Source of the DNA: Lepidodermella squamata
Lineage: Eukaryota > Animalia > Gastrotricha
Reading direction: 5' to 3'
NCBI GenBank assembly: GCA_047495785.1
Contig: JBLDXI010000026.1
Coordinates: 744,001 to 808,000 of the forward strand
Length of the DNA: 64,000 bases
A program made the translations under genes and the position numbers. Below, one piece after another: positions 26,906 through 62,591 of the stretch. The notes below the pieces were generated by a model. The model had not been told where the DNA came from. It ran no database searches and saw nothing but the letters and a program-made list of their open reading frames with translations. Numbering within the stretch: position 1 is the stretch's first letter; every line of letters begins with the position of its first letter.

Positions 26906-27199
26906 TCAGAAGAGACTGTGATCGATGGCCAGTTTGCTTTCACTTGGATTCGTGTAATAGTCTTGCGACAAGCGGCGCCAAAGCGGGCCCAGTCCAATAA
27001 TGTCCCACTTTTTCTTTACTCGATCAAAATTTTGAAGCCTGATAGAAAAAAATGCGATTTTTTCGGAATATATTAGGAATATTTAAAAAGTGTCTTACGA
27101 TGAAGAATCCTCAAATGCTCCATTTTCTAAAGCCATTGCTCGTTCTAGATGAACGAGGCAAATAACCAGAACTATCAAATATGTCGCAGAAGATGCCAT
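26906..27199 (-). CDS. Small secreted prepropeptide (candidate peptide WDIIGLGPLW between KK and RR)
   Basis: MASSATYLIVLVICLVHLERAMALENGAFEDSS|SLQNFDRVKKKWDIIGLGPLWRRLSQDYY...SLF*; phase-2 intron. Confidence 0.72.
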
Positions 27200-27384
27200 T
27201 TTTTGCCAAAAATCGACAGCATGAAAAACGAACACAAATTTAAGTGACTCCGTGACGTGAATATTTCGTGACATTTTATCTTTCGATACTGCTAACTTGA
27301 TAATATTGACATATGGCATGGAGAATCGAAAGCTTTGGCGATGAAATTTTCTCACGAGATAATTCAGTTTATTTTCGATCAAAA

Positions 27385-27650
27385 ATGCGTTTAACCTGCT
27401 TTATCGGTGTCTTTTTAATTGTAGCGAGTCTGGTCATTTTCTGGCCGGGTGGTGGTACCAATCAGGTGGCAGCGTTTGCCGCCAGAAGCAGCCGCTTCCG
27501 ACTGTCAGCATTTCGCCCTCGAACGTACTTTTGAAATTCAGCTGAAAAAAATGAATTCAGCCTTGTTTTTTATATAGGAAGCGCATTAGAACCACATTGG
27601 TGCGACAGCGACTATTGCCAAGTAAAAGCTCGTGGCATTCACCCTCGTGA
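27385..27650 (+). CDS. Small secreted cationic prepropeptide with furin-type RTKR site
   Basis: MRLTCFIGVFLIVASLVIFWPGG...FRPRT|KRIRTTLVRQRLLPSKSSWHSPS*; phase-2 intron right before KR; head-to-head with the previous gene. Confidence 0.65.
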
Positions 27651-27777
27651 AGAGTCTGTAAACTTGATGAAAACCGGACAGTATATATATAAACGCCTAA
27701 TTTCATGAAAATAAAACATGACCTAATACTTTATTTTTCGCCAAGTTTTTTTTGTACAGGAAGCCTTTGCGTTATTA

Positions 27778-27924
27778 AACAGTGGACGTCTGAAAACGGA
27801 CCTGAAACGTCCATTTCACCATGAGAATGTCGTCGCTGATAGAACGTCCCTCGAACGTCCACTGCGCAAATCTCTCAGAACGTCCATACAATCTTCAAAG
27901 TTATCTTTTGAAGGTCCACTGTTT
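27778..27924. repeat. Small inverted-repeat element with internal (A)ACGTCC/GGAC repeats
   Basis: AAACAGTGGAC ... GTCCACTGTTT termini and repeated GAACGTCC. Confidence 0.55.
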
Positions 27925-29221
27925 TCAATTGAAACCTGATCACGAAACCGAAACACGTGATTCTAGACATGGTTGTAGACAGGAAAAGTTACATTTTTGT
28001 ACGTGATTGCGGCAGACACAATGGACGTATGGAACGGACTTGTATAAGGTCCATTCCTCCTTATAGAAATGTCGCTCGTTTTTCTCACTCGTCCGTTATC
28101 GATCAAAAATTGCACATCGCAACGTCCACATCGACACGTGAGAGCTAACGATGAAGATGTCCTTTTTCTCAGCGAAATTTCCGATAAATATTCCAAAAAA
28201 CCTTCTTGCCAAATAGTTGTTTATTCAAGAGCAAAAATCCAACGATCGATTTTACAATTCAGTGCTTATTTTTCTGATAAATCACCAGTCTTTGATGCCG
28301 ATATTGAGAAAGTGCATCGGTATCGATGAAAAAAGGAAAAAGTCAGATTCACAAATTGAACGCAAAAATTCAGTCCTGCGCGAGCTAAATGACTACCCAA
28401 GCAGCTGCTGACCGATATAGCAAAATCGATCTTAAAGGACTCGATCCATATATATTTCAATCATAAAAAACAAGCACTGTGTCTATGGCAACTCGATTGT
28501 TAAATTAGGCAGTCCACATTTTTAATAAATGTTTATCTCTCTATTAGACCCAAAAACCGAGTCCACAGGTCATTTTGCCTTCATGCATTTTAGATGCTAA
28601 TTGGAGTGCAAATTTGCGCTTCAAATATAATTGACGAGAAAATAGGTACATATACTTACAGGTATATCAAAGTGCAAATTTAGTTACGATTTTGTTTCAA
28701 AAAATTTCCGATATTTTTTTCTGCTAGCGATGCAACGATTTAGTCGATAATTCTTTCGTCCATGTTTGTACCTATTCTTGGAAAAATTCGAGAGATATTT
28801 TGAATAAAATCCACGCTGTCCCAGTAATGTTTTCTAGAATTTGATTTTCAAAATCAGAATCGTCGAATTTCAGCAAGATGAACTTTGCATAATTCAATAA
28901 CTACTTGAAATCCGTAGAAAGCAGCATAATCCAATATATTGCGTGGTATAACGTACATTGGTACACCTTTTTTTATCTGTCGGCCTACCTTTGCTTTGCC
29001 GATTTAATTTAGGAGAAATGCCGAAGCAACAACATGCCACATGCATAGTACAAAGCTGTCAATTTTTTATTCTGATCCAATCATCGATCGGGACTTCTTT
29101 CCAATCCAATGAAAATCCAATGAACCCTAGTCATACTTCTGTGTCTCCCAGCCTCTTTGGTTGCGGCTCTTGCAGTATGGTAGGGCAAATTTCGAATGCC
29201 CCCATTTCAGAGCATTAGGGT

Positions 29222-31692
29222 AAGTTCGTACCAGTAAATTCGTATCGTGGTCCTTTCGTACTAATACATTCTCATATCATGTCATTTTCATTTCGTGATC
29301 AATTTATGCCAGGAAAAGAGACCTTTTTGCCCGTGAGTTCGCCCGTGCTTCAACGAGTTGAGTTAAGAGCGGTTACATTTTCGATCACTTTGCGTACGTT
29401 TTGAGTGGAATCGGAACTATAAAATCTTACATTTTGGCCTCTCCTTAATCATAATTTTGCAATTACATACTAAATAAAAAATTTGTGAAACATTTAGGCG
29501 GTTCTATGACCTAGTTTCGGGCTGCGCGCGCTCAGCCAATTAGCGTGACCTCTATTGAGTTAATTATTACTTGAACTAGTCATTACTAATATGCTTGTTG
29601 CTAATTTCTACAATTATGTGCGTGTATTAGGGTAGGGTGAGATCATCGAAAGAAAGTCTAAAAATTCTGAAATTAATTTTTCGTAGAATTTTTATCGACT
29701 TTTAACCGGCGTGGAAGTTCAAAATCGCCGCGTCGCATATTACACAGTAGGTCTGCGCTTATGTTGGACTGTGCGCTTTAAAAGTTAGCACATTGCTTGG
29801 AAAACGCGTCCCTCGTGTTTATCAGTGCCTAAACGTGTCTAGCTGGGGGCGACTACACTGTAAAAAATAGGGTGCTGATTACCCTGGGTATTTACCCTTT
29901 TTCAATTTTTTGAGGGGTAAATGCTCTCGCCGATTCCTTTGTGGTAATTCGCTCCAAGGTAAAAGTGGGGTAAATACCCTTGGGTGGTAATTAACTGTGG
30001 CAATTCTTTTCTTGGGTGGCAATCTAAGGGCAATCACCCTCGCGCAAATTTGTTAATTCTATTTCAATAAATAAATTATTTATTTGATTTTTAATTATGA
30101 AATATTAGTGTTATAAACCTCTAAAACATGTTAGCATAAGTAAAAAAAGTTGAGGATAAACTCTGGTAAATGTCTCATGGTCGAGGATGGTCAAAACAAA
30201 ATGACATCCTGAGTCTGAATTTTACCGTATACCTTCGTATGTGCAGCGCTGATATGATGCGCAGTAAGATCCTTTCAGAGATTTTGATATCGATTTTGCA
30301 GCCACCTGAGCCAGGCAAAAAGGTCCCTTAATAAATTAGAAGTCCCTCCCTGATAATACGGTAGATACGGTATACCGTAGCCGAGTTATTTCAGGGTTGG
30401 ATTTTAAACATAAACAAAAATAACCAATAATCGCAGCTAATTGTCAAGATCTATGGGATGACGCAAAATTTCAGCTAATTTTAGTGCCGGCAACGTGGCT
30501 AGCATCGCCAACTCTCTAAAATCGTTCTTCAATTGGATTCTAGATTATAGCTCTCAATTAGTAACAGGGTCCTCGCTAAATCTTAATCAAATAAATCTAA
30601 ATGAAATGACTGGTTCAACTCAATTTAAAACTGCAATTCCTAAGCAATTAATCAAAGCAATTAAGAAGCTCCACCTAGTCAATAGTCAAGTCGGTTTCAC
30701 CTTTTTAAAATATCACCTCCACTCAATCAGCAGTGGCTTCCCAATTGAGCTAGCGCTATTCGGTGGTGCAACTTTGGAGTATCAACTTTATCGATTTGCT
30801 TTGCGAAATGACTTGCATTCAATCTCATAACTCAAATCAGCCGAATTCTAAAAAATGGCTGAACTCAGCCTAGTGCATATGCAAATCAGTCGATTCGCTC
30901 GTAAGCGCTGCTGCATAGAAAGGCCTCCTTGCTAAAAACTAGCTCTAATCATTCATTTGCAATGTGAAATGAAAAGAAGACAATTGAAAAAGTAAATATC
31001 GCGCGCAAGTCAAGTTGCAGGTTTCCGTGTTATAGGTGTGTTAAGGGTGTTACGTTTTCCGGTGTTATCAAAGGTAACCCGGTGGCCTTTGGTGCCATCC
31101 GGATACCTTGGGACCCTCCTTATTAATTCGAATAATTAATTATTTAATTGAATAAGTTAAAATAATTTATTTGAATAATTATTCAAAAATAAATTCCAAA
31201 AAATTTAATTGAAATAATTAAGAATAATTTCAGGTTAATTACCCCTCAGCAATGAAAGACATGCTGGAAGATAATTACCCTCTCTGTGGTAAATAATCCT
31301 TACGAAAAAAACTCAGAGGAGTAATTTCAATGCACCCCGTGTGCATTTTACCCCCCAAGCGCCATACAATTGAATGGAGTAAATTCGGGGTAATCACCCC
31401 CCTATTTTTTACAGTGTATAGGATTTATGCAGTTTTTGTATATTCCATTGTAATTATTGATGATGGTGAAAGTGATCTCGATGATCAGGGAGATGACGGT
31501 GATGACGAGTGATAAATGAATTATAAAGCGTTAAATAAACACGAGACGAAATGGTCGCTACTTCATCTTTAATTGTTATGAAAATCACGAAATTGCCGTT
31601 TAAATTAAAGTTTTAAATTTTATTTTTTTACATGAGAATTTTACCATCTTATTACGAAATGACCACGGTGCGAATTTCTGGGTACGAAGCTA
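29222..31692. mobile_element. Old TIR element that hosts a nested insertion
   Basis: 29222-29260 (AGTTCGTACCAGTAAATTCGTATCGTGGTCCTTTCGTA) is an imperfect reverse complement of 31653-31692. Confidence 0.55.
29856..31416. mobile_element. 1.56-kb non-autonomous DNA transposon with CACTGTAAAAAATAGG TIRs and TA flanks (CACTA/EnSpm-like ends)
   Basis: ta|CACTGTAAAAAATAGGG ... CCCTATTTTTTACAGTG|ta, many subterminal TTACCC/GGGTAA repeats, no transposase ORF. Confidence 0.85.
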
Positions 31693-32857: not shown

Positions 32858-33212
32858 ATGGCTAGATTTTCTTTGTATTTTCCGATTTTTCTCCTGGCAC
32901 TGTTTTGCGCCATCGAAATTACCCTGGCTTGGAACGTTGCGTTCGGCGATACCGACGAGTCTGACGATGAAAACCTGCAAATAGTTAGAGATCGACCTGC
33001 AATGTTAGTAATTTCCAAAAATTTCGAAAAAAATCATTAAAATTTCAAAAAATTTCTTTAGTTTCGAAGACGATGAAGCAAGTGCCAATGATATCAGTGA
33101 CGACGGCGATGATGATGAGGAAATCCCGGCACCACTTTGGCTCGTCCAAAAACGCTACAACCCGTACCAAGTTCGCGTGCAGCCGGTTGGCTTTCGGCAG
33201 AAAATCGGCTAA
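32858..33212 (+). CDS. Prepropeptide: signal, very acidic propeptide, KR, then YNPYQVRVQPVGFRQKI-amide
   Basis: MARFSLYFPIFLLALFCAIEITLA-WNVAFGDTDESDDE...PA|IFEDDEASANDISDDGDDDEE...VQKR-YNPYQVRVQPVGFRQKIG*; upstream TATA-like site and downstream AATAAA. Confidence 0.85.
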
Positions 33213-33415: not shown

Positions 33416-33717
33416 ATGAAATCCACCTTATTTTGCGTTCTTTTCATTGCGGCCCTTCTGCCGGCTAATTTAGTATATTGCTTCGATTTTGTTGAGAACG
33501 AACTCAATGAACGGTAAGAAACTTCATATTGAAAAAATTCACTCATTTGGAAGGAAATAATACATTTTTTTACCACTACAGTACACCTGAGCTATTTGGC
33601 GAGACTTTTAAACGCTTTTACCCAGCTGCTCTTTACGGCAGTAGACCCCATATCGGCACGGCTAAGCGACGTTGGTCACCTGGACTGGCCGCATCTCTTC
33701 ATAAGCAATTTGATTGA
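33416..33717 (+). CDS. Prepropeptide (FYPAALYGSRPHIGTA; RWSPGLAASLHKQFD)
   Basis: MKSTLFCVLFIAALLPANLVYC-FDFVENELNE|RTPELFGETFKR-FYPAALYGSRPHIGTA-KR-RWSPGLAASLHKQFD*. Confidence 0.82.
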
Positions 33718-34975: not shown

Positions 34976-35528
34976 ATGAAATCAGCTATATTTTGCCTAT
35001 TCGTCGTTGCTATTCTCCTGCCTAGCCAGATTATTCAAGCTTTCGACATGCTGGATGAACTCGAGGAAAGGTGAGATTAAAGATCACTCCCTAAAATATT
35101 TAAAAAATTTGAGAATTGCCAGAAAAATTAGAGAAGCTTGGCCAAAAATTTGATAATGCAAAATGTATCTCAAGGAGATTAATTTATTTTTAATTTATTT
35201 TGCCAAGCCAGTGCAGCCGATTTCTCTTTTCATTCTTTTCACTTTTCCTAATTAATCAATTCCTAATTAATAATATATTTTTATCACTGGCTTTCCGCAG
35301 TTTGACTAAAATAAATATCAAATTTTCTCGAATTTTCTCGTTAACAGGGATCCGGAATTTTTCGGCGAAAAGTTCCATAAAAGGTTCCTGCCAATGAGCT
35401 ACTACGACCCGAGAGCTGGAGCCGTTGCAGACGTCGGCAAACGTAAGCAAACGTCGGCAACCGTCGGCAAACGGCAGTGGTTTGCGACAAATAACAAAGC
35501 TATGCGCGACGCTCTGGTCGGAAACTAA
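34976..35528 (+). CDS. Neuropeptide-like precursor with two GKR amidation sites (paralog of the 33416 gene); exons 34976-35070 and 35348-35528
   Basis: MKSAIFCLFVVAILLPSQIIQA-FDMLDELEE|RDPEFFGEKFHKR-FLPMSYYDPRAGAVADV-GKR-KQTSATV-GKR-QWFATNNKAMRDALVGN*. Confidence 0.87.
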
Positions 35529-41150: not shown

Positions 41151-43619
41151 ATGCCGAGAAGTTTTTCCAAGGAAGAGAAAGAAACACGCATAATGCATTG
41201 CAGGGTGAGTGAAAAAACATGTTATTAATATTTTCAAATTATCATGTTTTGCTTAACCTAGATTTGCGCCGCTATTGTGCCACGGCGTAAACGGTATCAC
41301 CCGAAAACCTGCGAGGCGTGCCAGAAGTTTTTCACGCGAAATTTTTCGCGCCGTTCTGAATTGTTGTGCTCGAGCGGCAAATTCAACTGCCCGGTCGATG
41401 TTGGCAATCGCCGATGCTGCCCGAAATGCCGCTTCGAAAAATGCGTCGCAATGGGAATGCATTGTAAGTATTAAAAAAATTAACAGAAATGCTTCGACTT
41501 TGAATTTTGAAAAAATGCTTTCAATATACTTCAAAATGTTCAACATTCAAAGTTCGAAAAATGTTGTTTTAAATCAATTTTTAACTGAAACCATAATTTA
41601 CAGATTTTTTTCCGAATTTGGACAATGTTGAAAAATATTCGAAGAATTTTTCTTAATTTATTAAACAATTGGTCAACATTTTGAAAAATTGTTTTAAATG
41701 ATTTTTAACATTTTCTCCAGCCAAGCAGCAGATTGCTCGGAGCGATGATTCGAAATTGTTGAAAGACGAGCCAAGATCGAGCGATTCAAACTCGTCAAGC
41801 TCTGCCACTGAAGATGCGCCAATGTTGGCGAAAGCGCCGGCGAAACACGTCGAAGATTACGATTCGATGCCTACTGCTATTCACAGCACCCAAACACCCC
41901 CGGCTAGAGTGTCTAGCGATGCTCCGATTTTCGTCAATGTTCCCCTCATGTTCGATGCTGCAACGCTCGATAACGCTGTTCGAAATTCATTCAACGCTTT
42001 CACAATTCTCAACGGCTTGGAAATGGTTAGCAGATTTAATTTAAATTTTAAATTAAATTTGTTGTAACAGCTGTTGCTCAAATTTTCCATTTTTTTTTAA
42101 TTTTTTCAACATAAAAAATAACGTGGTACCTTTTTCATGCTCTCAACTTTTATCCATCCTCGTGTAATTAAATCTAAAAAAGTGTGTAATTATGTTCTCG
42201 ACAAAAATTGTCCGCGAGCGCAGGCGTCGCGCTTCGGTGTCTGATGTCTATGCACGACATTAGTTGCGCGTCTGGGACAAAATTTGCAATTTCGCACTTG
42301 TATCTCGAGTGTCGGTTGCTACTTATTTCAATGTCTGCTGATGATTGATTTTTTTTGTCTAGCTCTCGCTGCCGAGCAGCAAAGCGAGTGATCACGCGGC
42401 TATCAAACAAGTTCACGACAGTCTCGAGGTTGGCATAGCCTACGCCACACATTTCGGGGGTGAGTACAAAAAATCAAGAAACAATGAGTCGAATTAAATT
42501 GTCGAATACGACAGATATTTTCAAGTTAACCCTCGATGAGACGAATACTATGCTGATGAAAAGCTGGCAGGCGATTAGTGCCGCTTATGCCTGTCTACCC
42601 GGTAATGCGTTGTCGAAGTTTGGCTCAGACAAAAATCTGCTGACAACCTGCATGCATCTCAATCCAGAACTTCGAGTTTGTATAATTAACAGACAAAATA
42701 TTTATTTTTAATTTCAATTTTTTCTCTAGAACTCAATCAGCTCTGCCTCTGAATTGTCTGCGCTTTTCGAAGCCTGGAACCCGTCCCTTGTCGAACTATC
42801 ACTATTTTTCAGTCTTCTCTTATTTAATGGTAAGAGACATTGTACTTTCGTTATATTATCGCTAATATTATTATTTATTACGCCGTTTTTTTTGTCTTTT
42901 TGTAACGTGGCTGTGCTGACGTATATGGGGTGCAAATTAATTGAAAAAACATTCACCTTACGTGTTTTTCTTTCGTTAAAATAATTTGGGACATGTGGAA
43001 ATAATGAGGTGGGGAAATTTCATAATTATTGCATTTTTCGTGCACCGAGCGTACGGGAAAATTAGGAGAGTGAGTAAAAATCCATAATGAATCAATAAGC
43101 GACCAAAACGGGGGCTACAACGATGGGGAAATTCATGTTTTTGACGATTAAGAATTTTCAGAAAAATTTCGAAGCTGATTTTCGATTTTTTAATTTCACC
43201 TGTTGTTGCATAATTTTGCATAATTAACGGGAAATTAATTTTTTTAATTTGAGTTTTTACCTAATTTTTGTACAGCTATTTCTATGCTGTCCAAAATTAT
43301 CTTACGATTTTTCCGATTTTTTTGCAATTTTTTGCAATTTTATTCATTAATTGATTTTTTCTCTTAATTAGCTGAATCTGTGCACGGAAACGAGCGGCTG
43401 AGTCTGTTGAGGCACCTGTTTCTAACCGCGTACAGTTTTTGTTCCTCCGACGAGTCTAAACGACCAGCCGTTGAATCGTGGCGCATGCTCATGCTGTGTC
43501 TGGACCTTTCTTTCAAAATCGTCGAAGCTCAACGCAAAGCTGAGCCGCATCTCATCGCTTCAATGCTTGCGAACAACAACGGCAACACCGGTTTCGTCGC
43601 GAGTTCAAAAGTAAATTAA
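41151..43619 (+). CDS. Divergent nuclear hormone receptor (NR-d), 7 exons
   Basis: MPRSFSKEEKETRIMHCR|ICAAIVPRRKRYHPKTCEACQKFFTR...CSSGKFNC...CPKCRFEKCVAMGMH|...FTILNGLEM|...CLPGNA...HLNPELR|...WNPSLVELSLFF|...VASSKVN*. Confidence 0.87.
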
Positions 43620-44218: not shown

Positions 44219-44519
44219 TTACACAGCCGTTTCGCCTCGCATTGCAGGCAGGTAAGGACGGACTTCTTTCACCTCATCCGGCGATTCGTCATTGCAATCG
44301 ACAGCAAACGTCTGTGTGTTCGGGTCCAATTCTTTCATATCATTCGAACTGAGAAATAAATGACTAAAAATAACACGAAATTCGCTAATAAAACACGAAT
44401 TACTTTATTCCAACATCGAAGTAGTCGTAGTCATCGGCGTTTGCTATCGGATCTCCAGCGGCAAAATTGATCAAAGTCAGAAAAAGCATGAAAAAATTGA
44501 GAGCAACAAAGAAACGCAT
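44219..44519 (-). CDS. Small acidic secreted protein or prepropeptide
   Basis: MRFFVALNFFMLFLTLINFAAG-DPIANADDYDYFDVGI|NSNDMKELD...RPYLPAMRGETAV*; phase-2 intron. Confidence 0.62.
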
Positions 44520-44729
44520 ATTTGCGTTTTCCAAAAATAGCGAAAAAATCGGAAATGATTGTTATTGAGATATTTTCATCCTTCCACCCTTTGCATGACC
44601 CAGAATTGTCTCGCCAACTAGTAATTAGCTCGCATATGTTTTTGCTAATTTAGGCTTGCGTGTCTTTTTTGCGACACCACGATGCACGTGATTTTCATAA
44701 TTTTTTATTTAAAAATATTTAAAAATAAA

Positions 44730-45082
44730 ATGAAGACCGGTTTAGTCCTTCTCGCCGTAGTTTTTGTGGCTCAGTTAGGCCTGATTGAATGCATTTTGAT
44801 GGGCTTTCACCGTTCATGGCCGTTCCAACTCGACGATGAAAACCAGCCGTACTTATACCGCCGGCTTTAGTAAGCAAAAATAATCAGGATTTTTTTGTTA
44901 ATTTTGTAATAATTTCCAGCAAAAGATCTCTGGTGTGGAGTAAGGCCGAGCGAACTGCTTTGATGCGATATTTTCGCGACAAAATGCGCGAAAAATCGGC
45001 GATCAGTCGAAAATCGGTTGAAAAGCGCCGGCCGAAAAACAGGAATCCTAATCGATATCGAGTCTCGCGCGTGCTAGGCTGA
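44730..45082 (+). CDS. Prepropeptide with several dibasic sites and C-terminal Gly (RPKNRNPNRYRVSRVL-amide)
   Basis: MKTGLVLLAVVFVAQLGLIEC-ILMGFHRSWPFQLDDENQPYLYRRLY|KR-SLVWSKAERTALMRYFRDKMREKSAISRKSVE-KR-RPKNRNPNRYRVSRVLG*. Confidence 0.83.
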
Positions 45083-45382: not shown

Positions 45383-45697
45383 ATGAAATTCACTACTGTC
45401 ATATTCTTGATTTTTGCAATTTTATTAGCCGAAATTTCCGCATCACCTCTCAGATTCGGCCCGGCTTTCGACATACCGCCAAGTCGAAAGAAGGCGGCAA
45501 TGTCATCTGTCGAACCGATTTACAACGATGGGTCAAGCCGGTATTGGTCTCTATTCAAATCATATGGCCGTTCTAATAAGCCGAAATCGATTGCAGAACC
45601 ATCGATCGAATCGATTAGTCCTCTCGTTGAATCAAAACAGCCAGTAGGCTTGAAACTTCGGTTGGATTTCAATCGCATGGGCTCATGGCCAGTTTAG
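45383..45697 (+). CDS. Intronless small secreted protein or prepropeptide (possible YWSLFKSY-amide)
   Basis: MKFTTVIFLIFAILLAEISA signal; RKK site; R-YWSLFKSY-G-R; TATA-like TATATAAA upstream and AATAAA downstream. Confidence 0.75.
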   Translation: MKFTTVIFLIFAILLAEISASPLRFGPAFDIPPSRKKAAMSSVEPIYNDGSSRYWSLFKSYGRSNKPKSIAEPSIESISPLVESKQPVGLKLRLDFNRMGSWPV

Positions 45698-46887: not shown

Positions 46888-47127
46888 ATGAAAATGAATG
46901 CAATTTTCTTCTTCACTATTCTATTGTATTTTGCGCAGATTGGTAGCGTACGCTATTTTCCCTATTTTGGCCTATTTTCGAAGGTAAATTTTCAAATGAG
47001 CTTTACGATTTCTTTCTATCCTTAAATGAAGCAATTGGCTCGGATTTCCTGTAAAAAAGGGAGTATTAAAATAAATCAATTCGAAAATTCCGAAAATTCT
47101 TTCGGGATATTACCCCAGTCGGCATGA
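46888..47127 (+). CDS. Possible small secreted peptide gene (2 exons; exon-2 frame uncertain)
   Basis: MKMNAIFFFTILLYFAQIGS signal-like sequence followed by an AAG|GTAAAT donor. Confidence 0.4.
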
Positions 47128-47270
47128 GCAAACAGGATATCTTTTTTCCTTTCATTAAATTTCTTTTATTGGGTGCGATGTTCGTGAACTCAATAATTGC
47201 GGAATCAATTATGCGGAAAGAAAGTTCCCTTCCTGCTGCGGTTATTAGTCATCGAGTTGCGGGAGGCTAA
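47124..47270 (+). CDS. Possible small secreted peptide ORF ending in Gly
   Basis: MSKQDIFFPFIKFLLLGAMFVNSIIA-ESIM-RK-ESSLPAAVISHRVAGG*, followed by AATAAA. Confidence 0.4.
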   Translation: MSKQDIFFPFIKFLLLGAMFVNSIIAESIMRKESSLPAAVISHRVAGG

Positions 47271-47477
47271 ATAAATTAATGTAAATTGTTGTAGAATTGT
47301 TTCGATAATATCAATACTAGCAGTCATTTATATTCAGGTTCTCGATATTCATCGCATTTTTAGGTAAATCCCAAGAGATGCGTTTCATTGATTGGGACAA
47401 GGTAAAAGCTAAACCACAAATGTTTTCATTTACCTATTTTAGATTTTAGAGGGATATATAAATTTAAATTAATCAAT

Positions 47478-47823
47478 ATGTTGATTGCAGCAGTGGTTTG
47501 TTTTTCGTTAATTTCGGTGCAAATTGCTGACGCTGTAGCCGACGTTCCATTATCAAGGTAAGAAGCAGTTATTTTTACGAATTTATCATTTTTTTTAAAT
47601 TACACCGATTTTAAGAGGTTCGTATAGGTCCACATCAGCAGGTTCTTCAAATCGATTTGCTAATAGCGATGACGATGACGTTGCGGTGTCAGCTTGGCGG
47701 GAGATGATTCGGGATTCTTTGAAGAAAAACCAATTCGCTAAATCACGACAGGCTATTCGCCCAACACCGAGGCGAAATCCGATCAGAACCCTGAGCTGTA
47801 TGACAGATAACGCTGGGAATTGA
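47478..47823 (+). CDS. Small secreted prepropeptide
   Basis: MLIAAVVCFSLISVQIADA-VADVPLS|RGSYRST...SDDDDVAVSAWREMIRDSL-KK-NQFAKSRQAIRPTP-RR-NPIRTLSCMTDNAGN*; phase-2 intron. Confidence 0.72.
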
Positions 47824-48656: not shown

Positions 48657-49106
48657 ATGAAGGGCTTGAATTTGGTATTATGTATCTTCGCGCTCGCCGG
48701 CTATCTTTTCCTCGAAGTTATGGGTCGAATATCGGTGGAAAATCGGTAAATTCCGATACATTTTTTTCGAGGGATTTTTTTTATTATTATCATGATTTAT
48801 AGATTTGATACGGTCATCAAGCGTCGCGGAATTTCCGCCAAAATTGGTCGCGGTTCTAAAACTAACGAATGGCGCGTTATCCCCGCAGGCGGATCTGAAT
48901 CGGTTGAGGTCAAAATGAAGTTCGTCGATGTCAAAAGCCGCCTTATGAGAGCCGGAAACCGTGTCCCGAACCCTAAACAGACGGCTTACGTGCTATTCAC
49001 CCCTATTCCATCGACGTCGACGCCCAGGTCAAGAGTAGTACTGCCAGGCCGGACTTTCAGATTTGGCGATAAGAACAAGAGTAAAAAGCAATCTGGATAT
49101 TATTGA
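48657..49106 (+). CDS. Secreted cationic prepropeptide (KRR followed by ~90-aa basic mature part)
   Basis: MKGLNLVLCIFALAGYLFLEVMG-RISVEN|RFDTVIKRR-GISAKIGRGSKTNEWRVIPAGG...KKQSGYY*; TATA-like site at ~48606. Confidence 0.78.
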
Positions 49107-51141
49107 TAGCGTGGACAATTCGTGTATTTAGCTATATTATTTGATACTATCGATTAAACTTATTGAAATAAATTGACATTTATGAGGTATTTAGTAACCT
49201 GTTTATTCGAAGGTTAAACCTCGGCCTTAGCTCACCGGAAAAAAATCAAACTAATTGAGGTGGGATTTTTGCATGTGAACTCCTCTCAATTACGTATCCT
49301 TCCGAGAGGTTTTGAGTCCCACTGCTCGGTGCACAGCGAGCATGTGAGGATTTTTCCCGAGGAATTCAATTTCCCTCCGCTCCCGTGTCGAATAGCCCAA
49401 GTTCAAATTCAATTGTTCAAAAATTGCACGTAAGCTATTTTGAAGATCAATGACAGACGTTAATAGATCGAAAGTTTCAGTCGCTTGGACAATAAAATTG
49501 TCTGCTCTTGTTTTATTTTCCCTCGAGGTTGATCGATTCTGTCCTATAAAGATCGAACGAAAACTCGGTCTATTGAATGTCACCCTTGTGCATAATGTCT
49601 CGCATGAGGAACTGGGTGAGTGCAATATTAGGATATATTAGTGAAATGTACCGATTCGTTCAGCTTGGAAAAGAGTGAAGTTTCTATAAATAAGCGGTTT
49701 TTCAGACGAACCCCCTTAGGATTCCAAGAATCGCCCCTTTTCAAGTCAACACAGTTCATGCCATTAGCTGCAAAATGCAGAAATAAAAGGGAAACACGAC
49801 TTCTCATTTGTTCAATTCGGAAAATTCCGCCTTAATTTTTTTTTAAATCAATGCGTTATTTTATTGCGATTTGTGCGACGGTTTTATTTGGTTTTTAAAA
49901 TCTGTCGCCGAGAAATCGACCACGCCATCGACCTCTTCCTCAGTAGGCCATCGTCTAGTCAGCGCGGGGTAATAAAACGCGGCACAGGTCATCGCCGAAT
50001 AGGCCAGCATTCCAACGGCTAACGCAATCAGCTGATAATCAAACGCTGACCTATCAATAGCCAGCACGAGGATGGTTGTCGCAATAAAAATTATTGTTGC
50101 GCTAATGACAGCAATCCGCGTGAGGTAGCACTCGTAATTAATGAAAGTGGAAATCGCCAATTTGTTGCGTACCTCGTAAGCCGAGAAACATGACATGAAA
50201 AGGAGAAAAGCGTTAGCAGCGCCGATTGCGCCGATCCATTTCAGCTGATTATCAGAAGCGCAGTAACTTGTTTTGTACGCAAAATAACCTTCCATAGCTT
50301 CAGATGAAAATGTTGCCGATAAATTGGAAATCACGCTGAAAGGATCGGTAATCAACCAGATTGATACGAGTGTCGCAATTGCTAGTGGGAAAGCTAGCGA
50401 AAAAATGTGCATAAAAGGTCGGTAACGAGCCAGTTTTTCAGAAATAGCTAATTCGATTGCAATCAAATTGATAACTGTTCGATTTGCCAGGTAGCGCTTA
50501 GCTATGGCTTTCGACATGTGATGAAGGGCGGTTATTCTCGACAACAACACGCCGTTGCATGCAGAAATTCCGATGGCGAGAAAAATCGGCTGAATTATGC
50601 ATAATTTATGTCGGAATATTGACGCCTCCAGGGCGAAGACAACTGCGCCGATATTTAGCGTGAAGTACCCGAAAAAAGCCGTCAAATTAGTTGGTACGTC
50701 GAAAAAATACAAGAAATTCACTAAATCGCTATTTGCAAATGTGTTAAGCGCCGTGAAAATTTGAATTCCAGTCACCAAAACTGCGATTGCGATAACAATG
50801 GCGACGAAAAGAAGTGGAAAGCGTTTCTCGATCACAGTAATTTCTGTCAAATCTTAGGGTGGGTGGCCTGATTTTGTGAACCAAACAGCGCCTTCTGATT
50901 TGACTAGGTTATAGGTCGTAGTGTTCAGGACGGTTCGGTAGTCGGAAGATTTTCGCTCGACTTTGTAGGCGTATCGAACGGTGCCATTCAACCACTGAAT
51001 TATCCACATTTCCTCACTGTCAAGTTCGAGACGTTCGGAATATTTAAGATGGCCGATACGAAGGCCTAACATTAAAAAAGTGTAAATAAAAATTTAGAAA
51101 ATTTGAAAAATTTGAAAACTTAGTTCAAAAATTAAAATTTA

Positions 51142-51240
51142 TAATTTAAAATTCGATTTAAAATTTAAAATTCGATTTAAAATTTAAAATTCGATTTAAA
51201 ATTTAAAATTCGATTTAAAATTTAAAATTCGATTAAAAAT
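51142..51240. repeat. 19-bp minisatellite (AAATTTAAAATTCGATTTA) x5, intronic
   Basis: Directly visible in the sequence. Confidence 0.92.
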
Positions 51241-52182
51241 TTGAAATTTGAAAATTTTAATTTTAATTCTAATCGAAAAATTATGTATTTGTAATTTCTG
51301 AGTCAAATTTCCAACCTTGAAATTCCATTGAAGCCGCTGATTGGTTGGCAATGGCTTGTACCAAATCGGGATGCGTTCCAAAATCACGAATCGACGCATT
51401 AAATCGAGATTTGAGCACCAAATCTGTATTATGAAGCGTATAAACAGCTGCCATAGTCGCATCGTGGCATAAATGGCGCTGAGGATAGTCGGCGACCCGC
51501 GTGTTATTCAAAATACCTAAAACACGGCTCTCAAACCACGGCAAATCGTAACCGAGCCACGATTTGCCGAAATTTCTCGTCGCACCTAGCCAACTGCCGA
51601 TGTAAAACGTGATTTTCAACTGCTCAATCACGATTTCTCGACTGCAACCAGGCGGTAGAGATAACGTAGAGCTATCTGCCGAAAAATATGTGTAAAAATT
51701 AGCCAAGAACGCGTAGTTGGGCGCTCGCATTTCCGCCTGAAAACTCAGGCAGAGAAATTTGACGAGAAGTGAAACTTGGCCGTGAGCCAAAACAACGCAT
51801 CTCGCGCCGCTCTCCTTTATAGCCGTCATCGTTGCTTCAGTCACATCGTCCTCGCTGGTGTAGTACAACACATCGATCTGATTTTCGATCATCAATCGCT
51901 GCGTAGTTTGGGCTAGCATGTAGTCGTTTGCGTTGGGTGAAAATGTGAAAATTCCGGCCTGGCGCCATTTTCCGATATTTTGCATGAAGAGAACGGTGGC
52001 AACGGCGAGATTTTCGTAGGGCATTTGAACTCGGTATAAGGTTGAATAAAGATAGCGGCGGCCTATCAAAAACGGCCCGGTACAGCCCTCGGCGAATTGA
52101 ACAAATTTATTCATTCGAACAGTGAAAGCAACACCTGCAAATAATTAAGGTAGAAAAATTACAAATGGGTCACTAAAAATGA

Positions 52183-52564
52183 GGTTCCAGCATTAAATTA
52201 TTCAGATACTTCGCGATTTTGGCGTTTTCGTTTTTTTATCGATAATGATGCCCTCCCTGATCCTAGGATTCTAGCTCCATGGTGCCCTAAGCTACGTAGA
52301 AAATTATCGATGTCGGGTTATAGGATGGCTGATATCGGGAAAATCACTGATTTGTAAAATCGATACTTGGAATCGATATCGGCTCTATTGGGCGAAGTAT
52401 ACTTCTTAAACTGACCGCTCATATCGCGAAAGACGCGTAATATGAAGGTCTATCGATTAGGCATGATAAAAAAAAATGCGAGATCCTTGTGAAGACTAGA
52501 AATTCAAAAAAAACATATTTTAGGAGAAATCTAGCGCTGGAGTCTCACATTTAGTGCTGGAACC
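52183..52564. mobile_element. MITE-like element (GGTTCCAGCA(T/C)TAAAT TIRs) in intron 1 of the class C GPCR; related end at ~22190-22250
   Basis: Inverted termini. The same terminal sequence GGTTCCAGCACTAAAT(T/G)TGAGACTCCAGC recurs at 22221. Confidence 0.6.
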
Positions 52565-53966
52565 CTTAATTAAGGGTACGCACACCCATTAAAAATTGAA
52601 CAAAATCAGCTCACTTTGACAAGCGATCGATGTGCCGACTACAACCGGGGCTATGTAGTTTCGATTTCTAGGTCCGAAATTTTCAAAATCTCGTAGAAAT
52701 TCAACGAAGCTTTGAGGCGCTTTGTGCGCACTTCTGCCTTCGTCTTTCACCTTCAATTCGATGTGATAATCCGGCAGGAATTCGGCCTTTGAATTGGCTG
52801 CGTCGATGACGACTTGAGACGCAGCTTTACAAGCTCTAGCATCCGACGGTTCTTGGCCTGTTAACGGCATTAAACTCAACATTTCCAGGGTGAAAGGCTT
52901 TGCCGATGCTCCAATCGCCAGAAAAATTAACAAAATCGAACATCGGAACATTTTGTTTCAAATGAAAAATTGTTAGGTCTGACGTTGTCTTCGGAAATTG
53001 ATAGCGCCTTTTAACTTGATTAAAACGACTCGAATGAAAGTAAAACTAAGTAAAGCTATGTTCAAGAAGAACCTAGTATGTAATGGAAAATCTCAAAACA
53101 ATTCAATTTGAGCTGATTAGATTTTAGGTGCGGCCACGAAAATCTCATCTCGGGCTAAAAACCACTTTCCATCGATATAATTTTAGTGCCGATCAGACGA
53201 TATTGATTTTGATCGATAATCAATAGTCGATAATTGCGATTTTTGCCGATTTCAGGTGGAATACGTTAGTTTTATGAGAGAAACTCTAAAATCACAATGA
53301 ATTTTGAACAATCATCACCCGAATCGAAGAAATCAGTCACCGATAATCGATAATCGATAATCGATAACTGTCTATGTATTCAGTGCTATGATCTACGACT
53401 AGTCATTTTAGAGGTATTTTAGTGCGCTGATTCGATTGTACGAGTCAAAATTATATTTTCTGGCATCGATGTGAAATCGACCAGACGGCGACTTTTTTCA
53501 GACCGATTTCAGAAGGTAAAAAATGCCCACATCAATATTCATTCGTTTAAATTTTATAAGCTTAATAAGATGGGATCCCAAAGCGAAATCCTGTTTTTAA
53601 CCTTTCTCTGAAAATCAATTATTGCTCCTATCAGCCAGTTTTTTATTGTCTCCGCGCCATGAATGCCCGCCGCCAGTTTGACCCCGTTTATTGTCACCTT
53701 AATTAAACGGCAATGCAATTCATTTATTATGCCACCATAATATCGAGGGAATACAAAACGGGTCAAAAACATGTTTTTCTTTTCACAGTGGACGTAAGAG
53801 ACAATGAAACGGAATGATCAAAAACATTATTATTCATATGCTTTCACCAATGTCAAACATGTCGTATAACCCACCTTCCGTATATGCATCAATTTTCAAC
53901 CTTTAAAAAATATTTTCCATTTTTCTGCACTCAAATTTGAATTAATTGATCGCGGGAAAAAAATTG

Positions 53967-54025: not shown

Positions 54026-54084
54026 CCGGCAAAAAAAATTCTGAAATATTTTCTGTTCAGTTTGTCGAAAAATCAAAGTTATAT

Positions 54085-54598
54085 ATGCTGGCATTTCTTT
54101 TGATCCTCGCTCTTGCCGAGCAGAGCGCCGGAATTTCAAGCAGTACATTTCTTCGGAATAAGTATCAAAATTCAAACTCAAATTACGACATCATGAAATG
54201 GGGTGAAAATAGTCTCAACGATTTATTCCCCGAAGGCTATGTCTTAGAGTAAGTCATTTAATACTCGAATTATTCGGAAATTAATTTGAATTTGAATTTC
54301 AAGGAAAAGAAAATATCGAGCGGTTCCGCATCGCTGGTCGAGCGATCAAGCTGTGGATCTGTCGAGGCAAGTCAAAACCGGCGATGCTAGCCAATTCGTG
54401 CATTCGATATCATCTTCAACCAGCAACAGCGGCAAGCCTCGGAAAATCGCTTTGCCTGTAATGCTGAACTTACTTCGACCTAAGAACTCGGTTGAAAATG
54501 TGGCAACGACAGGGCTGAATACGCCGTGTAAAAGTAAAGCAGCTCTTCATCGAGCATTTGAACTGCTTAGAATTAAACAGCCGCAAAAAATCGAATAA
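54085..54598 (+). CDS. Family-A secreted prepropeptide, copy 1
   Basis: MLAFLLILALAEQSAG...YVLE|KR-KYRAVPHRWSSDQAVDLSRQVKTGDASQF...LNLLRPKNS...AFELLRIKQPQKIE*. Confidence 0.85.
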
Positions 54599-55176: not shown

Positions 55177-56508
55177 CTAGCGAAGCAAGCCTGGGCTGAA
55201 GTTGAGCGTCTTCTCGAAAAATGCAAATCCTTTCGACGAGTCTTGCGTTCCGGCGAGCTGTTCCAGAGCACTTTTCTGCAAATTATACGTCGCTCTAACG
55301 CAGTCGTTGAATTTGTGAAGCCGAACGGCTACCAAGCTCTTGTTACCTCCCAGAGTGGTCATCATTGATAACTTGAGAGTCGCAAGTAACTTCCGCCGTA
55401 AGCTTCTCAAACGATCGTTTTTCCCTGTGGTATCTGCCAGACAAAATGCCAATGGAAGAAGATTCAATAGAGTAAAGGCTTACCGTGAAAAATGACGACG
55501 CTGAGCAGTAGTGCAGCTTCGATAAAAGACGGTGACAGTACATCGATTGCATCCTTTAAACGCTTTACGTTTTCTTTCACAGCCTGGTTATTTTTTGTAA
55601 GTAAACGTTCATCGTAGGTAAGAAATGACTCACAGATAGTTGAGGGTAAACTCGGTCCATAAGTGGGATCAAAGAGTCCGACATACCGAACCAAGACGGC
55701 CCACTTCCGCCGGGCAGATTGTGGAAAACTGCAGACATGTGAATTGTGGATGATGCTTGTATTTGAATCAAATCCTCCTCAGACAGCCCAACATCGGAAC
55801 CTGAAATACAACCATAACTTTAATCAGTTGAATTTAGGGCGAAATAGAAACTCACGGAGGAAGTAAGAGTTGTAGGCCTTTAAATGGTCCACAGCGTAAA
55901 CAACCTGGCTTAGGATCCGCTCGAAAAATTCCGACGGTTGCTTGATGGAGGAATCTTTCAACGGAACCTGGGCGGGGATACTTTTGAGAACTCGAAGGAC
56001 GGATGGCTACTATACTTACGAATTCAAGACCGTGTAGAAGCGTGTATGCTTGGAGGGATTTGACAAGAAGCTTACTCAATGGGCTGGTAGCAATCGTTCC
56101 CGGGGCAATGGGAGGTGATACGACTGGACCAGTAGTTTCTGATTTGGCCTCTTCCTCCTTAAATGGCTCTGGACTTTCTTCGCAATGGTCCGGAAAAAAT
56201 TTACCTATAGGAATGGAATACATCGGTTATTCACCCTGTGTGGTAAAAAGAGTCAAACTTTGCATTCCCGCGGCTACACAGAGGTCGAATCGGCATTTAC
56301 CGCACATTTTACGTGATACGTAGACTCGTTGCTTAGTGGGTAAGCCGAAGACACCTAGACGGCTGGACGGGTGTCTGCAGTGAAGTTGCTGATAACGATG
56401 GCAGTTCCTCCTGAAAAACTTTTGGCAAGCTTCGCAGCATGTTGGTTGGTAATTATTACGCCGCGGAACACGTGAATAGCACACCTTGCAAACTGTTTCT
56501 GAGGACAT
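55177..56508 (-). CDS. Divergent nuclear hormone receptor (NR-e), 6 exons
   Basis: MSSETVCKVCYSRVPRRNNYQPTCCEACQKFFRR...CGKCRFDLCVAAGMQ|...AYTLLHGLEF|...NLPGG...|LSPSFIEAALLL|...FSPGLLR*. Confidence 0.85.
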
Positions 56509-59039: not shown

Positions 59040-59539
59040 ATGCTAGCGTTCATTTTAATCTTCGCTTTTGCCGAGCAAAGCGCCGGTCTTTCAAAGACTG
59101 GCGATCTTCCTGGCAGTTACATCATTAAATCGGGTGAAAGTATTTTCATAGAATTCCAACCCAGCGTTGATCAGTCGCCCGAAAGCTATGTCTTAGAGTA
59201 AGTGATTTTCCTCGAAATTTTTCAGAAATTAATCGCATTTGATTTTTAAGGAAAAGAAAATATCGAGCGGTTCCGCATCGCTGGTCTAGCGATCAAGCCG
59301 TGGATATGTCGAGGCAAGCCAAGTCCGGCGATGCGAACCAATTCGTGCATTCGATATCATCTTCAACCAGCAATGGTGGCAATCCTCGAAGAATAGGAGT
59401 ACCTGTTATGCTGAACTTACTTCGACCTAAGAACTCGGTTGAAAACGTAGCAACGACAGGGCGTAATACGCCGTGTAAAAATAAAGCGGTTCTTCGAGCG
59501 TTTGAACTGCTTAGAATTAGGCAACCACGTAGAATATAA
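59040..59539 (+). CDS. Family-A secreted prepropeptide, copy 2
   Basis: MLAFILIFAFAEQSAG...YVLE|KR-KYRAVPHRWSSDQAVDMSRQAKSGDANQF...RQPRRI*. Confidence 0.85.
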
Positions 59540-59744: not shown

Positions 59745-59880
59745 AATTTAATGAGGTCATCAAGCGTCGCAAAATATCCGGCCAAAAGTGGCTGCGGTTT
59801 TAAAAATAGCAAATAGCGTGCTATCCCAACCGGATGTGATTCAGTGAAAGTTTTCAAGTGCCACCTGACCGGCCGGGCGT
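59745..59880 (+). pseudogene. Decayed paralog of exon 2 of the 48657 peptide gene
   Basis: GAGGTCATCAAGCGTCGCAAAATATCCGG...GCGTGCTATCCC matches 48811-48885 (FNEVIKRRKIS versus FDTVIKRRGIS) but carries a frameshift, a stop and no intact acceptor. Confidence 0.7.
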
Positions 59881-60306
59881 AACAGTTTTGGCAAGGGGAA
59901 AAACGTAATGCGAACAAATAGCGCAGACAATTTACATAGGCGAGGGAATTTATATTAAAACAACAACTAATGAGACGATATTTATTCCCATTATTGATAT
60001 ACGCTTCCTCCGAAATGTCAAATATGATTTTTTGCAAGCCCACGTTCCGTCAACTGGTCAATTAAATAATTGTGCACTAATTATCTCTCTGAAAAATAGC
60101 GACGATTTTTCAGCACTCAATATATTATATCGCGGGCTTTACTGACCTGAAATGCGTGAAATTGCGTCACGTCGAATACACCAGGGTACTAAAATGCAAA
60201 CTATCATCCCCGTGGGAAATTATTTTCAAAAATTAATCGTTTTAATTAGTATCTCAATTATGACCTCTAAATATTGTATCGGTCATTGTAAAAAAAATCG
60301 TCGAAT

Positions 60307-60938
60307 ATGAGCGTAATTACTATTTTTTTGTTAATCGCTTTAGCCGGGCAAAGTGCCGCTTTTTTGCAGGCCGGCAATTTTAACAGTATATTCGGCCCGA
60401 ATAAATATTTATTCTCGAATTATGGCATCGTTAAACCGGGTGAAAATAGCTTCCAATCAATGATGGGTGAGGAATCTAACGAGCATTTCCACAGCAATGA
60501 ATTCGCTCAGTTCTAGTAAGATAATAACCAAAAAATAATGTTCGAAAAATTCCGAAATCTTGTTATTTTATAGCGAACCGGTCCCGGCCGGAGACCGTTT
60601 TATGAGGTAAAATTATTTCAATATTGATCACCGATTCGAAAAAATAGAATTTAAGGAAGCGAAAATATGTCCCGCATCGTTGGATGAGCGATCAAGGCAT
60701 GGACCTGGCCAATTACAACAAGAAAAGCAATTCGAACCGATTTTTGGGATCGCATGCCTCGCAGCGCCTGGCTTCGCCCAGCGGCGGCTTGAAGCCTCGA
60801 ATTAATCAGAAGGAGAAATCTGATTTGAACTCGCTTCGTCCTCGAAACTCGGCTAGAACCATTTGGGTAGCTCCGAATAGTCGCTATCCATCACGCACTA
60901 ATAAGGGACAATATTTTCCAAGAATTCGTGTCAAATAA
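60307..60938 (+). CDS. Family-A secreted prepropeptide, divergent copy 3 (3 exons)
   Basis: MSVITIFLLIALAGQSAA...NYGIVKPGEN...QFY|EPVPAGDRFMR|KR-KYVPHRWMSDQGMDL...LRPRNS...IRVK*. Confidence 0.82.
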
Positions 60939-60995
60939 AATAATTAATTTAATTTTAAATTTATTTTTAGAAATAATTTTAAAATAAATTAACCG

Positions 60996-61360
60996 ATGGA
61001 TTTGATCAAATATTTTTGTTTTGCTATCCTCGCCTCGGCAATGGTCTTCGACTCGTCGGCGCACATTCCAACTTTTGTGTGAGAAATTTTGAAAAATTCG
61101 GGAAATCTGAAAAATGATATAATCATTATAGAAAAAGGCGTTATATTACTCAAGCTGTAATGTATCCGTGGCGAGGCGGCGGTGATCAACCCGAGTCGTC
61201 GAAATTTCAGGCTAATTTAAGCCAGCTGGTGATGAAAAATAAAGGAGCTTCTTTGGTACAAGGCCGCCTACGCGTCGGTTCGCCTAGCACCTTCCAACAA
61301 TCTATCGTTTTAGCGAAAAAGCGGCCGATGAAAAAAAATATAATTAATCATCATAGTTGA
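60996..61360 (+). CDS. Family-B secreted prepropeptide, copy 1
   Basis: MDLIKYFCFAILASAMVFDSSA-HIPTFV|KR-RYITQAVMYPWRGGG...NHHS*. Confidence 0.8.
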
Positions 61361-61622
61361 CCTGTCTAAAATCTTATGTTTGATGATCTGTAAAAAAGTA
61401 AAAAAACGCACGGACCTATAAACAACTCTTTTTTTATCGATTAAAATCACATAGCGAGGAAAATTTCCAGGTCACATCATCATCATGATAATTTAATCGC
61501 AAAAAATACGGTGCACTATTAGTGTCATTCGCCTATAAAAACGCCATAGCTTCAAGCTGACAGCTGACCGGCGACAAACATCATTTCGTTTTTCAGTTTT
61601 TTCAATATAAATCAAAGTTAAA

Positions 61623-62129
61623 ATGCTGGCATTTATTTTAATTCTTGCTTTAGCCGAGCAAAGCGCCGGCTTTTTGAAGACAGCCGGTCTTGGCAATATA
61701 TTTAGGCCGAATAACTATGCATATTCAAATTACGGCATCGTGAAACCGGGCGAAAATAATTTCCATCATAGTTATAACGATTTCAGCGCTGATTATTCGG
61801 CCGAAAGTTTAGCCTTGGAGTAAGTGATTTTTCTCAACATTTTTGAAATGAATAGCATTTGAATTTTAAGGAAGAGGAAATACCGGGCGGTTCCACATCG
61901 CTGGTCGAGCGATCAAGCCGTGGATCTGTCGAGTCTAGCCAAAACCGGCGATGCTAGCCAATTCGTGCAATCGATCAGTGGAGGCAAGCCTCGGAAAATC
62001 GCTGTAAAGCTGAACTTACTTCGGCCGAACAACTCGGCTGAAAATGTAGCCAAGACAGGGCTCAAAAGTAAAGCAGCTCTTCTTCGGGCGTTTGAATTGC
62101 TTAAAATTAAACAGCTGCAAAAAATATAA
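61623..62129 (+). CDS. Family-A secreted prepropeptide, copy 4
   Basis: MLAFILILALAEQSAG...NYGIVKPGEN...LALE|KR-KYRAVPHRWSSDQAVDLSSLAKTGDASQF...KQLQKI*. Confidence 0.85.
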
Positions 62130-62192
62130 TAAAGTAACAGTTTTGCTAAAAATTAAAAATTCGATTTATAATTTTGTAGATATATTTAAAAA

Positions 62193-62591
62193 ATGAAAAT
62201 TCATACGATTTGTTTGCTTTTCTTGATCGCCTCGTCAACACTTTGCGAGCCGTCGCATCAAATCGAGTAAGTTTTTTCTGTAAACAAACCTATACATGAT
62301 AATTTTTTATAATTTTTCAGGAAAAGGAGGTATATAACGCAAGTTGTGATGTATCCTTGGTGGCGCAATCGGGCGAAATTCACAAAATTTCTGGAAAATT
62401 CTAACAATTCGACTATCACTACTAATGGTACTATCAACGATCAGCCGATCGCAGTTTTTCAAGATCCTAAGCCAGTTCCGGGAGCTATCATTGGCAGGAA
62501 CAGGCTTCTGAGTAATGACATCGTCAAATTAAAGATTCAGCACAAATTGAAATTAGACAGGCAGCAGGACATTTTAAACCGAAAACTTTGA
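62193..62591 (+). CDS. Family-B secreted prepropeptide, copy 2
   Basis: MKIHTICLLFLIASSTLC-EPSHQIE|KR-RYITQVVMYPWWRNRAKF...ILNRKL*. Confidence 0.82.

Follow-up and report, generated by a model that had tools for sequence, protein, structure and literature searches.

The window analyzed here is a stretch of 64,000 nucleotides from the gastrotrich Lepidodermella squamata (contig JBLDXI010000026.1 of assembly GCA_047495785.1, called C26 below; the window is C26:744001-808000 in an assembly of 121 Mb and 151 contigs). Its G+C content is ~39% and its introns are very short. Between positions 26906 and 62591 lie small and mostly co-oriented genes, each predicted to encode a secreted precursor protein, that form a loose 36-kb neighborhood with NHR-like and class C G-protein-coupled receptor (GPCR)-like genes between them. 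A first-pass annotation of this DNA had proposed ~18 such genes. Comparison with a second copy of the locus, C49, individually supports 14 of them and shows that purifying selection acts on their reading frames, splice sites and stops; one candidate (46888) is rejected and three (27199-, 27385 and 47124) remain candidates.

Gene models and their exon layout

The models were built by reading the DNA and enumerating combinations of splice donors and acceptors, and 17 of them, ranging from 48 to 174 codons, were fixed. They are listed below under names taken from their start positions, with a trailing minus for the minus strand; Sd and Nd are the synonymous and nonsynonymous differences from C49. 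An ATG followed by a hydrophobic N-terminus is indeed present at all 18 of the coordinates for which it had been claimed, and our spliced models recovered both the outer limits of the region, 26906 and 62591, and the three amidated peptides that had been predicted earlier.

26906..27199, minus strand: g27199-, exons 27199-27099 and 27038-26906, 60-nt phase-2 intron (GTAAGA..CAG), 77 codons; AATAAA 30 nt past the stop; zero differences between copies; no paralogue
27385..27534, plus strand: g27385, single open reading frame (ORF) of 49 codons with a hydrophobic start; invariant between copies, no AATAAA within 156 nt, no paralogue
32858..33212, plus strand: g32858, exons 32858-33003 and 33062-33212, 58-nt phase-2 intron; Sd 12, Nd 4, no indel, GT..AG kept
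33416..33717, plus strand: g33416 (family C), exons 33416-33513 and 33582-33717, 68-nt phase-2 intron, 77 codons; KR and KRR sites; Sd 5, Nd 1, no indel
34976..35528, plus strand: g34976 (family C), exons 34976-35070 and 35348-35528, 277-nt phase-2 intron; Sd 2, Nd 4, no indel against 6.8 expected, GT..AG kept
44219..44519, minus strand: g44519-, exons 44519-44404 and 44348-44219, 55-nt phase-2 intron, 81 codons; acidic product; AATAAA 54 nt past the stop; Sd 5, Nd 1, no indel
44730..45082, plus strand: g44730, exons 44730-44869 and 44920-45082, 50-nt phase-2 intron; Sd 9, Nd 1, no indel (44694-44737 masked)
45383..45697, plus strand: g45383, single exon of 104 codons with a signal-like start, RKK and GR sites; TATA at -60, AATAAA at +39; Sd 6, Nd 1, no indel
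47124..47270, plus strand: g47124, single ORF of 48 codons with a GG-stop end; two substitutions only, in the near-invariant stretch 47100-47500; fails the crude signal rule given below
47478..47823, plus strand: g47478, exons 47478-47557 and 47616-47823, 58-nt phase-2 intron, 95 codons; Sd 12, Nd 1, no indel
48657..49106, plus strand: g48657, exons 48657-48745 and 48803-49106, 57-nt phase-2 intron, 130 codons; basic product, KRR site; Sd 14, Nd 6, no indel inside the coding sequence
54085..54598, plus strand: g54085 (family A), exons 54085-54248 and 54304-54598, 55-nt phase-2 intron, 152 codons; exon 2 opens KRKY; Sd 10, Nd 6, no true indel
59040..59539, plus strand: g59040 (family A), exons 59040-59197 and 59251-59539, 53-nt phase-2 intron, 148 codons; Sd 9, Nd 8, one in-frame 3-bp insertion in C49
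60307..60938, plus strand: g60307 (family A, divergent), exons 60307-60515, 60574-60606 and 60656-60938, two phase-2 introns (58 and 49 nt), both with GT..AG kept, 174 codons; Sd 10, Nd 10, no indel against 12.9 expected
60996..61360, plus strand: g60996 (family B), exons 60996-61078 and 61132-61360, 53-nt phase-2 intron, 103 codons; exon 2 opens KRRYITQ; Sd 6, Nd 3, no indel
61623..62129, plus strand: g61623 (family A), exons 61623-61819 and 61871-62129, 51-nt phase-2 intron, 151 codons; Sd 7, Nd 7, no indel against 11.2 expected
62193..62591, plus strand: g62193 (family B), exons 62193-62266 and 62321-62591, 54-nt phase-2 intron, 114 codons; Sd 8, Nd 6, no indel

Fourteen of the 17 models are spliced, and the proposal that the genes have one exon layout in common is borne out in every one of these: exon 1 (74-209 nt) carries the start codon and the predicted signal peptide and is always 2 mod 3 long, placing a phase-2 intron directly after it. 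This first intron measures 50-68 nt in 13 of the 14 and 277 nt in the remaining one. An in-frame stop is created by bases 2-4 of the intron (GTAAx or GTGAx) in 13 of the 14 spliced models; exons of this type readily catch the eye, and an ascertainment bias is therefore possible. The uniformity of phase does not stem from overlooked genes of other phases, since a scan of signal-like starts gave no further coding candidate: the additional signal-like ORFs of the region (39927, 43004, 56398, 57787, 60755-, 39772-, 32362- and 41546-) are without a coding signature. The last of these, an ORF of 97 codons (41253-41546, minus strand) which has the look of a secreted peptide with an NLG-stop end, lies antisense to an NHR zinc-finger exon and was rejected as an artefact because the substitutions fall on its own codon position 1.

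A crude signal rule (a hydrophobic 10-residue core with small residues at -3 and -1) was passed by 15 of the 17 models. The same rule fires ~17 times per shuffled window, and hydrophobic starts alone are thus weak evidence for a gene. AATAAA lies within 156 nt past the stop in 15 of the 17 models (background 0.19, p 1e-9) and TATA[AT]A lies upstream in seven of the 17 (background 0.14, p 0.006). Trans-splice-like acceptors upstream of the ATG are modestly enriched (6/17 against a background of 0.14), too modestly to be retained as a common feature, and a search for a shared promoter motif was negative, the best 7-mers occurring in 5-6 families, inside the null range.

Purifying selection between two copies of the locus

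C49 (132 kb) is collinear with the window, inverted, 90-98% identical and rich in insertions and deletions (indels), with window positions 18767-63277 corresponding to C49:12025-60000; it represents a haplotype or else a homologous copy of the locus. The comparison set consisted of the 17 models, with 5,418 bases of coding sequence (CDS), and was informative for 15 candidates, supporting 14. Positions 44694-44737, which include the first 8 bases of g44730, were masked to N in the copy-versus-copy alignments. The 176 CDS substitutions between the window and C49 are split 39/23/114 over codon positions 1, 2 and 3, and Sd of 116 and Nd of 60 correspond to a pN/pS of 0.15 (binomial p 1.7e-34; all 17 models). 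The CDS contain a single true indel event, an in-frame one of 3 bp, compared with ~133 expected at the local non-coding rate; two others that seem to be present at start codons result from ambiguous alignment of A or TA runs. The non-coding reference, which was made up of the introns and 150-bp flanks of the same genes (5,141 bases), carries 126 indel events and 4.7% mismatches. GT..AG is preserved in C49 for all 15 introns. Finally, 21 of the 60 residue changes fall within the first 22 residues and are mostly hydrophobic-for-hydrophobic, as expected if these residues form signal peptides.

Taken singly, 13 models pass on substitutions (P 2e-7 to 0.02), and the indel test is passed by all 14 supported models (P(0) 3e-6 to 3e-3), namely 32858, 33416, 34976, 44519-, 44730, 45383, 47478, 48657, 54085, 59040, 60307, 60996, 61623 and 62193. 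For g34976 the support consists of the lack of indels and the kept splice sites, its substitutions being uninformative. Candidate 46888 (46888..47022, plus strand), to which the first-pass annotation had attached a question mark, did not hold up as a conserved gene: C49 has 1-bp insertions and deletions of 2, 9 and 8 bp, which shift the frame, and the only plausible donor reads GC, not GT, in C49. The constraint test is silent on g27199- and g27385 because both sit in a 3-kb tract (window 25814-28800) in which the copies differ at three positions only, and which looks like a patch of recent gene conversion or loss of heterozygosity. With the full layout of the supported genes, g27199- is probably real; g27385 and g47124 are doubtful as genes.

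Predicted products, families and surroundings

The predicted products of three supported genes end in a donor glycine for amidation, which is absent from the other supported genes. The g32858 precursor consists of a predicted signal, a long acidic spacer, KR, the 17-residue YNPYQVRVQPVGFRQKI and a glycine before the stop (..QKI-G-stop). In g44730 the precursor ends with KR, the 16-residue and strongly basic RPKNRNPNRYRVSRVL and, again, a glycine before the stop (..RVL-G-stop). The g34976 precursor contains KR, the 17-residue FLPMSYYDPRAGAVADV, GKR, the 7-residue KQTSATV, a further GKR and a tail (..ADV-GKR, ..ATV-GKR), the second GKR being made by four 10-bp repeat units (CGTCGGCAAA-like) at 35430-35474. 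The predicted long peptides of all three genes are identical in both copies of the locus, the residue changes lying in signals and spacers (all four of them in g32858); those of g34976 cluster at the short second peptide, where two alter the peptide itself and one the basic site next to it, and three of them lie in the 10-bp repeat units. Basic cleavage sites that bound a peptide are present in g32858 and g44730 (KR), g34976 (KR...GKR) and g33416 (KR, KRR), and KR[KR]Y opens the last exon in all six window genes of families A and B.

Cleavage and amidation of this kind are chemically plausible because the genome encodes both convertase P-domains, with 10 matches to PF01483 (P_proprotein) above cut-off and thus at least 10 such loci, and PHM-like monooxygenases, with 39 matches to PF01082 (Cu2_monooxygen, PHM/DBH type; best 141 bits). 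The earlier proposal that the genes follow the substrate pattern of prohormone convertases, carboxypeptidase E and PAM fits several of them, which show the succession of signal, spacer, KR, peptide and glycine; six of the genes encode conserved C-terminal regions of 75-97 residues, not short peptides.

The PF01082 matches lie mostly in one large tandem array (C13:1.99-2.36 Mb), and others are found on C7, C12, C15, C20 and C32. This unusual expansion might accompany the amidation-type precursors of the genome.

The mature regions had been described as mostly unrelated to one another. This holds for six of the supported genes, which are singletons; eight of the 17 models, however, belong to three families. 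Family A comprises 54085, 59040, 61623 and the divergent, three-exon 60307, with copies outside the window at C26:948629 and C42:4930712. Family B comprises 60996 and 62193, with outside copies at C26:950414 and C42:4930289. Family C comprises 33416 and 34976, whose paralogy was judged by eye from the same signal, an ...ELxER / PExFGExF..KR F.. motif and the same intron phase. The order A then B is repeated at all three loci (the window, C26:948.6-950.7 kb and C42:4.930 Mb). In the window the family B ATGs trail the preceding family A stops by 58 nt (60938-60996) and 64 nt (62129-62193); the spacing is tight again on C42 and widens to ~1.5 kb at C26:948-950 kb. The B genes are without an upstream TATA, and the A-B pairs may be co-transcribed. 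The family A copy on C42 (C42:4929212-4932487, minus strand) has both exons intact and its splice sites kept, with ACG replacing ATG, and is either a fresh pseudogene or the user of a non-AUG start.

The first-pass annotation had recognized no known peptide family among these products, and in agreement with this, searches of Pfam, protein clusters, profiles and metagenomes found no homologue outside this genome. Database queries were single exons, and for g44730 the query began at 44921. Among 5.8 billion clusters, word-seeded searches gave no match for family A exon 2, g48657 exon 2 or g45383, and an exhaustive family A profile search of 1.84 billion representatives gave none either. Exact look-ups in public protein collections, which may not include the annotation of this genome, were likewise without a match, and the same is true of two scans of metagenomes for families A and B. 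When 10 exon products were compared with Pfam (E up to 1), none had a relevant match. A language-model feature search gave no usable match for family A; for g45383 the nearest named clusters were PDH, DH, NPY, galanin, urotensin and PBAN precursors, all below 0.9, and this likeness to hormone precursors is a weak lead. A resemblance to PDF suspected in the family A motif LNLLRPKNS..ENVA was dropped for want of Pfam support.

Among the ordinary genes of the window are four NHR-like genes of the zf-C4 type, a class C GPCR-like gene and a reverse transcriptase, as well as exons of a cNMP-binding channel:

896-1171, plus strand: NHR-like gene, zf-C4 with the ...F..L.GLE.VS motif common to its paralogues
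12565-13176, minus strand: NHR-like gene, paralogue with zf-C4 and the same motif
41262-42067, plus strand: NHR-like gene, paralogue with zf-C4 and the same motif
55852-56508, minus strand: NHR-like gene, paralogue with zf-C4 and the same motif
49861-52951, minus strand: class C GPCR-like gene, between g48657 and g54085
1749-3130, minus strand: retroelement reverse transcriptase ORFs (RVT_1, E 5e-28)

Four NHR-like paralogues within 64 kb suggest a lineage-specific NHR expansion. The class C GPCR-like gene has a 329-codon seven-transmembrane exon, exons resembling a ligand-binding domain and its own signal peptide at 52951; it is not recognized by Pfam, and language-model features indicate 7tm_3.

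Function and comparison with known systems

We favor, with moderate confidence, a model in which the region is a loose neighborhood of at least 14 real, lineage-restricted secretory-precursor genes whose products would be processed by convertases and whose likeliest role would be in signaling. Each small gene would encode a secretory-pathway precursor of 77-174 residues, with exon 1 supplying the start codon and signal peptide and, past the short phase-2 intron, the remaining exon or exons supplying the product. The proteins would enter the endoplasmic reticulum and then, to judge from their basic sites, be cut by furin/PC-type convertases. For g32858, g44730, g34976 and the paralogue g33416, the products would likely be short peptides, three of which would be C-terminally amidated through the glycine donor, and which could act as secreted signals (neuropeptide or hormone-like) or as host-defense peptides. 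The six genes of families A and B would be cut at the tribasic KR[KR] exactly at the start of the last exon, and this cleavage would free a C-terminal product of 75-97 residues that is conserved and probably disordered. From sequence features we infer that signaling is the most likely single function, and a prohormone-type reading is plausible for four of the supported genes.

Several observations weigh against this model. Pfam, word-seeded and profile searches found no homology to any known peptide family. The crude signal filter fires 47 times in the real window compared with ~17 times per shuffled window. Third-position periodicity is also present in the wobble-sharing antisense frame, and the assignment of strand therefore rests on the ATG, the signal, GT..AG and AATAAA. 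An amidation glycine is found in only 3-4 genes, and dibasic sites are lacking from g44519-. For the product of family A, no fold was predicted with confidence by AlphaFold (pLDDT 54, pTM 0.18), a result that fits disorder but that may only reflect the six-row alignment. Finally, the family A copy at C26:948629 has KNIL instead of KRKY, implying that cleavage at that site is not universally required.

The genes had also been cast as an arsenal evolving by birth and death. Some turnover is apparent, in that 46888 has decayed, the C42 copy of family A has ACG in place of ATG and the KRK site is lost in one paralogue; however, the genes are under purifying selection and there is no obvious arms race.

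The strongest alternative, which we consider possible and clearly less probable than the signaling model, is that the products are real and secreted but are not messengers, serving instead as antimicrobial, gland, mucus, cement, egg-coat, mating or seminal effectors. The order of signal, strongly acidic spacer, KR and cationic amidated peptide predicted for g32858 is one that frog-skin antimicrobial precursors typically show, the amide of RPKNRNPNRYRVSRVL predicted for g44730 is very basic with many Pro and Arg residues, and effector families typically consist of small secreted genes that are orphan, clustered and tandemly duplicating; the lack of any homologue found outside this genome points the same way. 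In contrast, a pN/pS of 0.15 and a lack of variation in the predicted mature peptides are seen more typically in conserved signaling molecules than in arms-race effectors, and neither a cysteine framework nor an amphipathic-helix signature was established. A bolder reading, to which we assign a rather low probability, draws on the phase-2 layout over at least eight sequence-unrelated lineages and on the 39 PHM/DBH matches: the genes could belong to one ancient, hyper-diversifying and partly amidated signaling or defense superfamily, specific to this lineage and partly expressed as co-transcribed A-B pairs.

It is improbable that the small ORFs belong to larger, or to polycistronic, transcription units, whether as co-transcribed A-B pairs or as upstream exons of neighboring genes. 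The close succession of A stops and B ATGs, the A-then-B order on both C26 and C42 and the lack of TATA upstream of B genes would fit such units; however, each model has its own ATG, predicted signal and stop, and in most cases AATAAA, the pair at C26:948-950 kb is far more widely spaced, and the upstream acceptor-like sites show only a modest enrichment. Least probable of all, and already refuted for the 14 models, is that these are chance ORFs in AT-rich DNA joined by a free choice of splice sites: shuffled windows do yield signal-like ATG starts, 46888 is not conserved, and for 27385 and 47124 the ORF itself is the only positive evidence, but the 14 models combine frame-specific purifying selection, near-zero indels, kept GT..AG and a strong excess of AATAAA, and paralogues of families A and B are conserved at two further loci.

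These findings identify at least 14 evolutionarily validated orphan secreted-precursor genes, three of which give concrete predicted amidated peptides for synthesis, mass spectrometry and assays with orphan receptors. More generally, micro-genes that are invisible to homology-based annotation can be validated by a comparison between two diverged copies of their locus. According to a 2024 preprint (10.1101/2024.07.20.604414), only an AKH-like precursor had been described in rotifers before its hidden Markov model survey of conserved families, and the rotifer literature that we searched describes conserved neuropeptide families only, with no such clusters.

In their layout the secreted-precursor genes appear to behave as prohormone or defense-peptide precursors, yet they would fall outside any known family. 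With bilaterian neuropeptide and hormone prepropeptides, the substrates of PC1/3 or PC2, carboxypeptidase E/D and PAM, they share a predicted signal, the spacer, KR or KRR sites and Gly or GKR donors, as well as predicted mature peptides that are invariant between copies and a genome that contains the families of processing enzymes. They differ in having no sequence relation to known families, in that most genes lack an amidation signal, and in that six encode conserved products of 75-97 residues.

The antimicrobial precursors of amphibian skin and insects, built from a signal, an acidic propiece, KR and a cationic, often amidated peptide, are matched exactly by the architecture of g32858. No gene other than g32858 shows this frog-skin-type architecture in full; in g44730 the end is likewise cationic and amidated, but the propiece is basic, and the likeness is one of resemblance, not membership. 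Also in common with these precursors are the short, strongly cationic, Pro- and Arg-containing peptide predicted for g44730 and the clustering of tandemly duplicating genes. Frog families, however, conserve their signal peptides, whereas signals are not conserved across the present cluster and selection is purifying rather than diversifying.

A further parallel is found in Drosophila, where the immune-induced Bomanin genes and the accessory-gland genes are tiny, with exon 1 encoding the signal, an intron of ~55 nt and exon 2 encoding the product. Those clusters resemble the present one in being lineage-restricted and easily missed. Their sequences are unrelated, and the neighborhood described here differs from them in that its intron phase is uniform over seemingly unrelated families, which hints at a common descent of families that no longer look alike.

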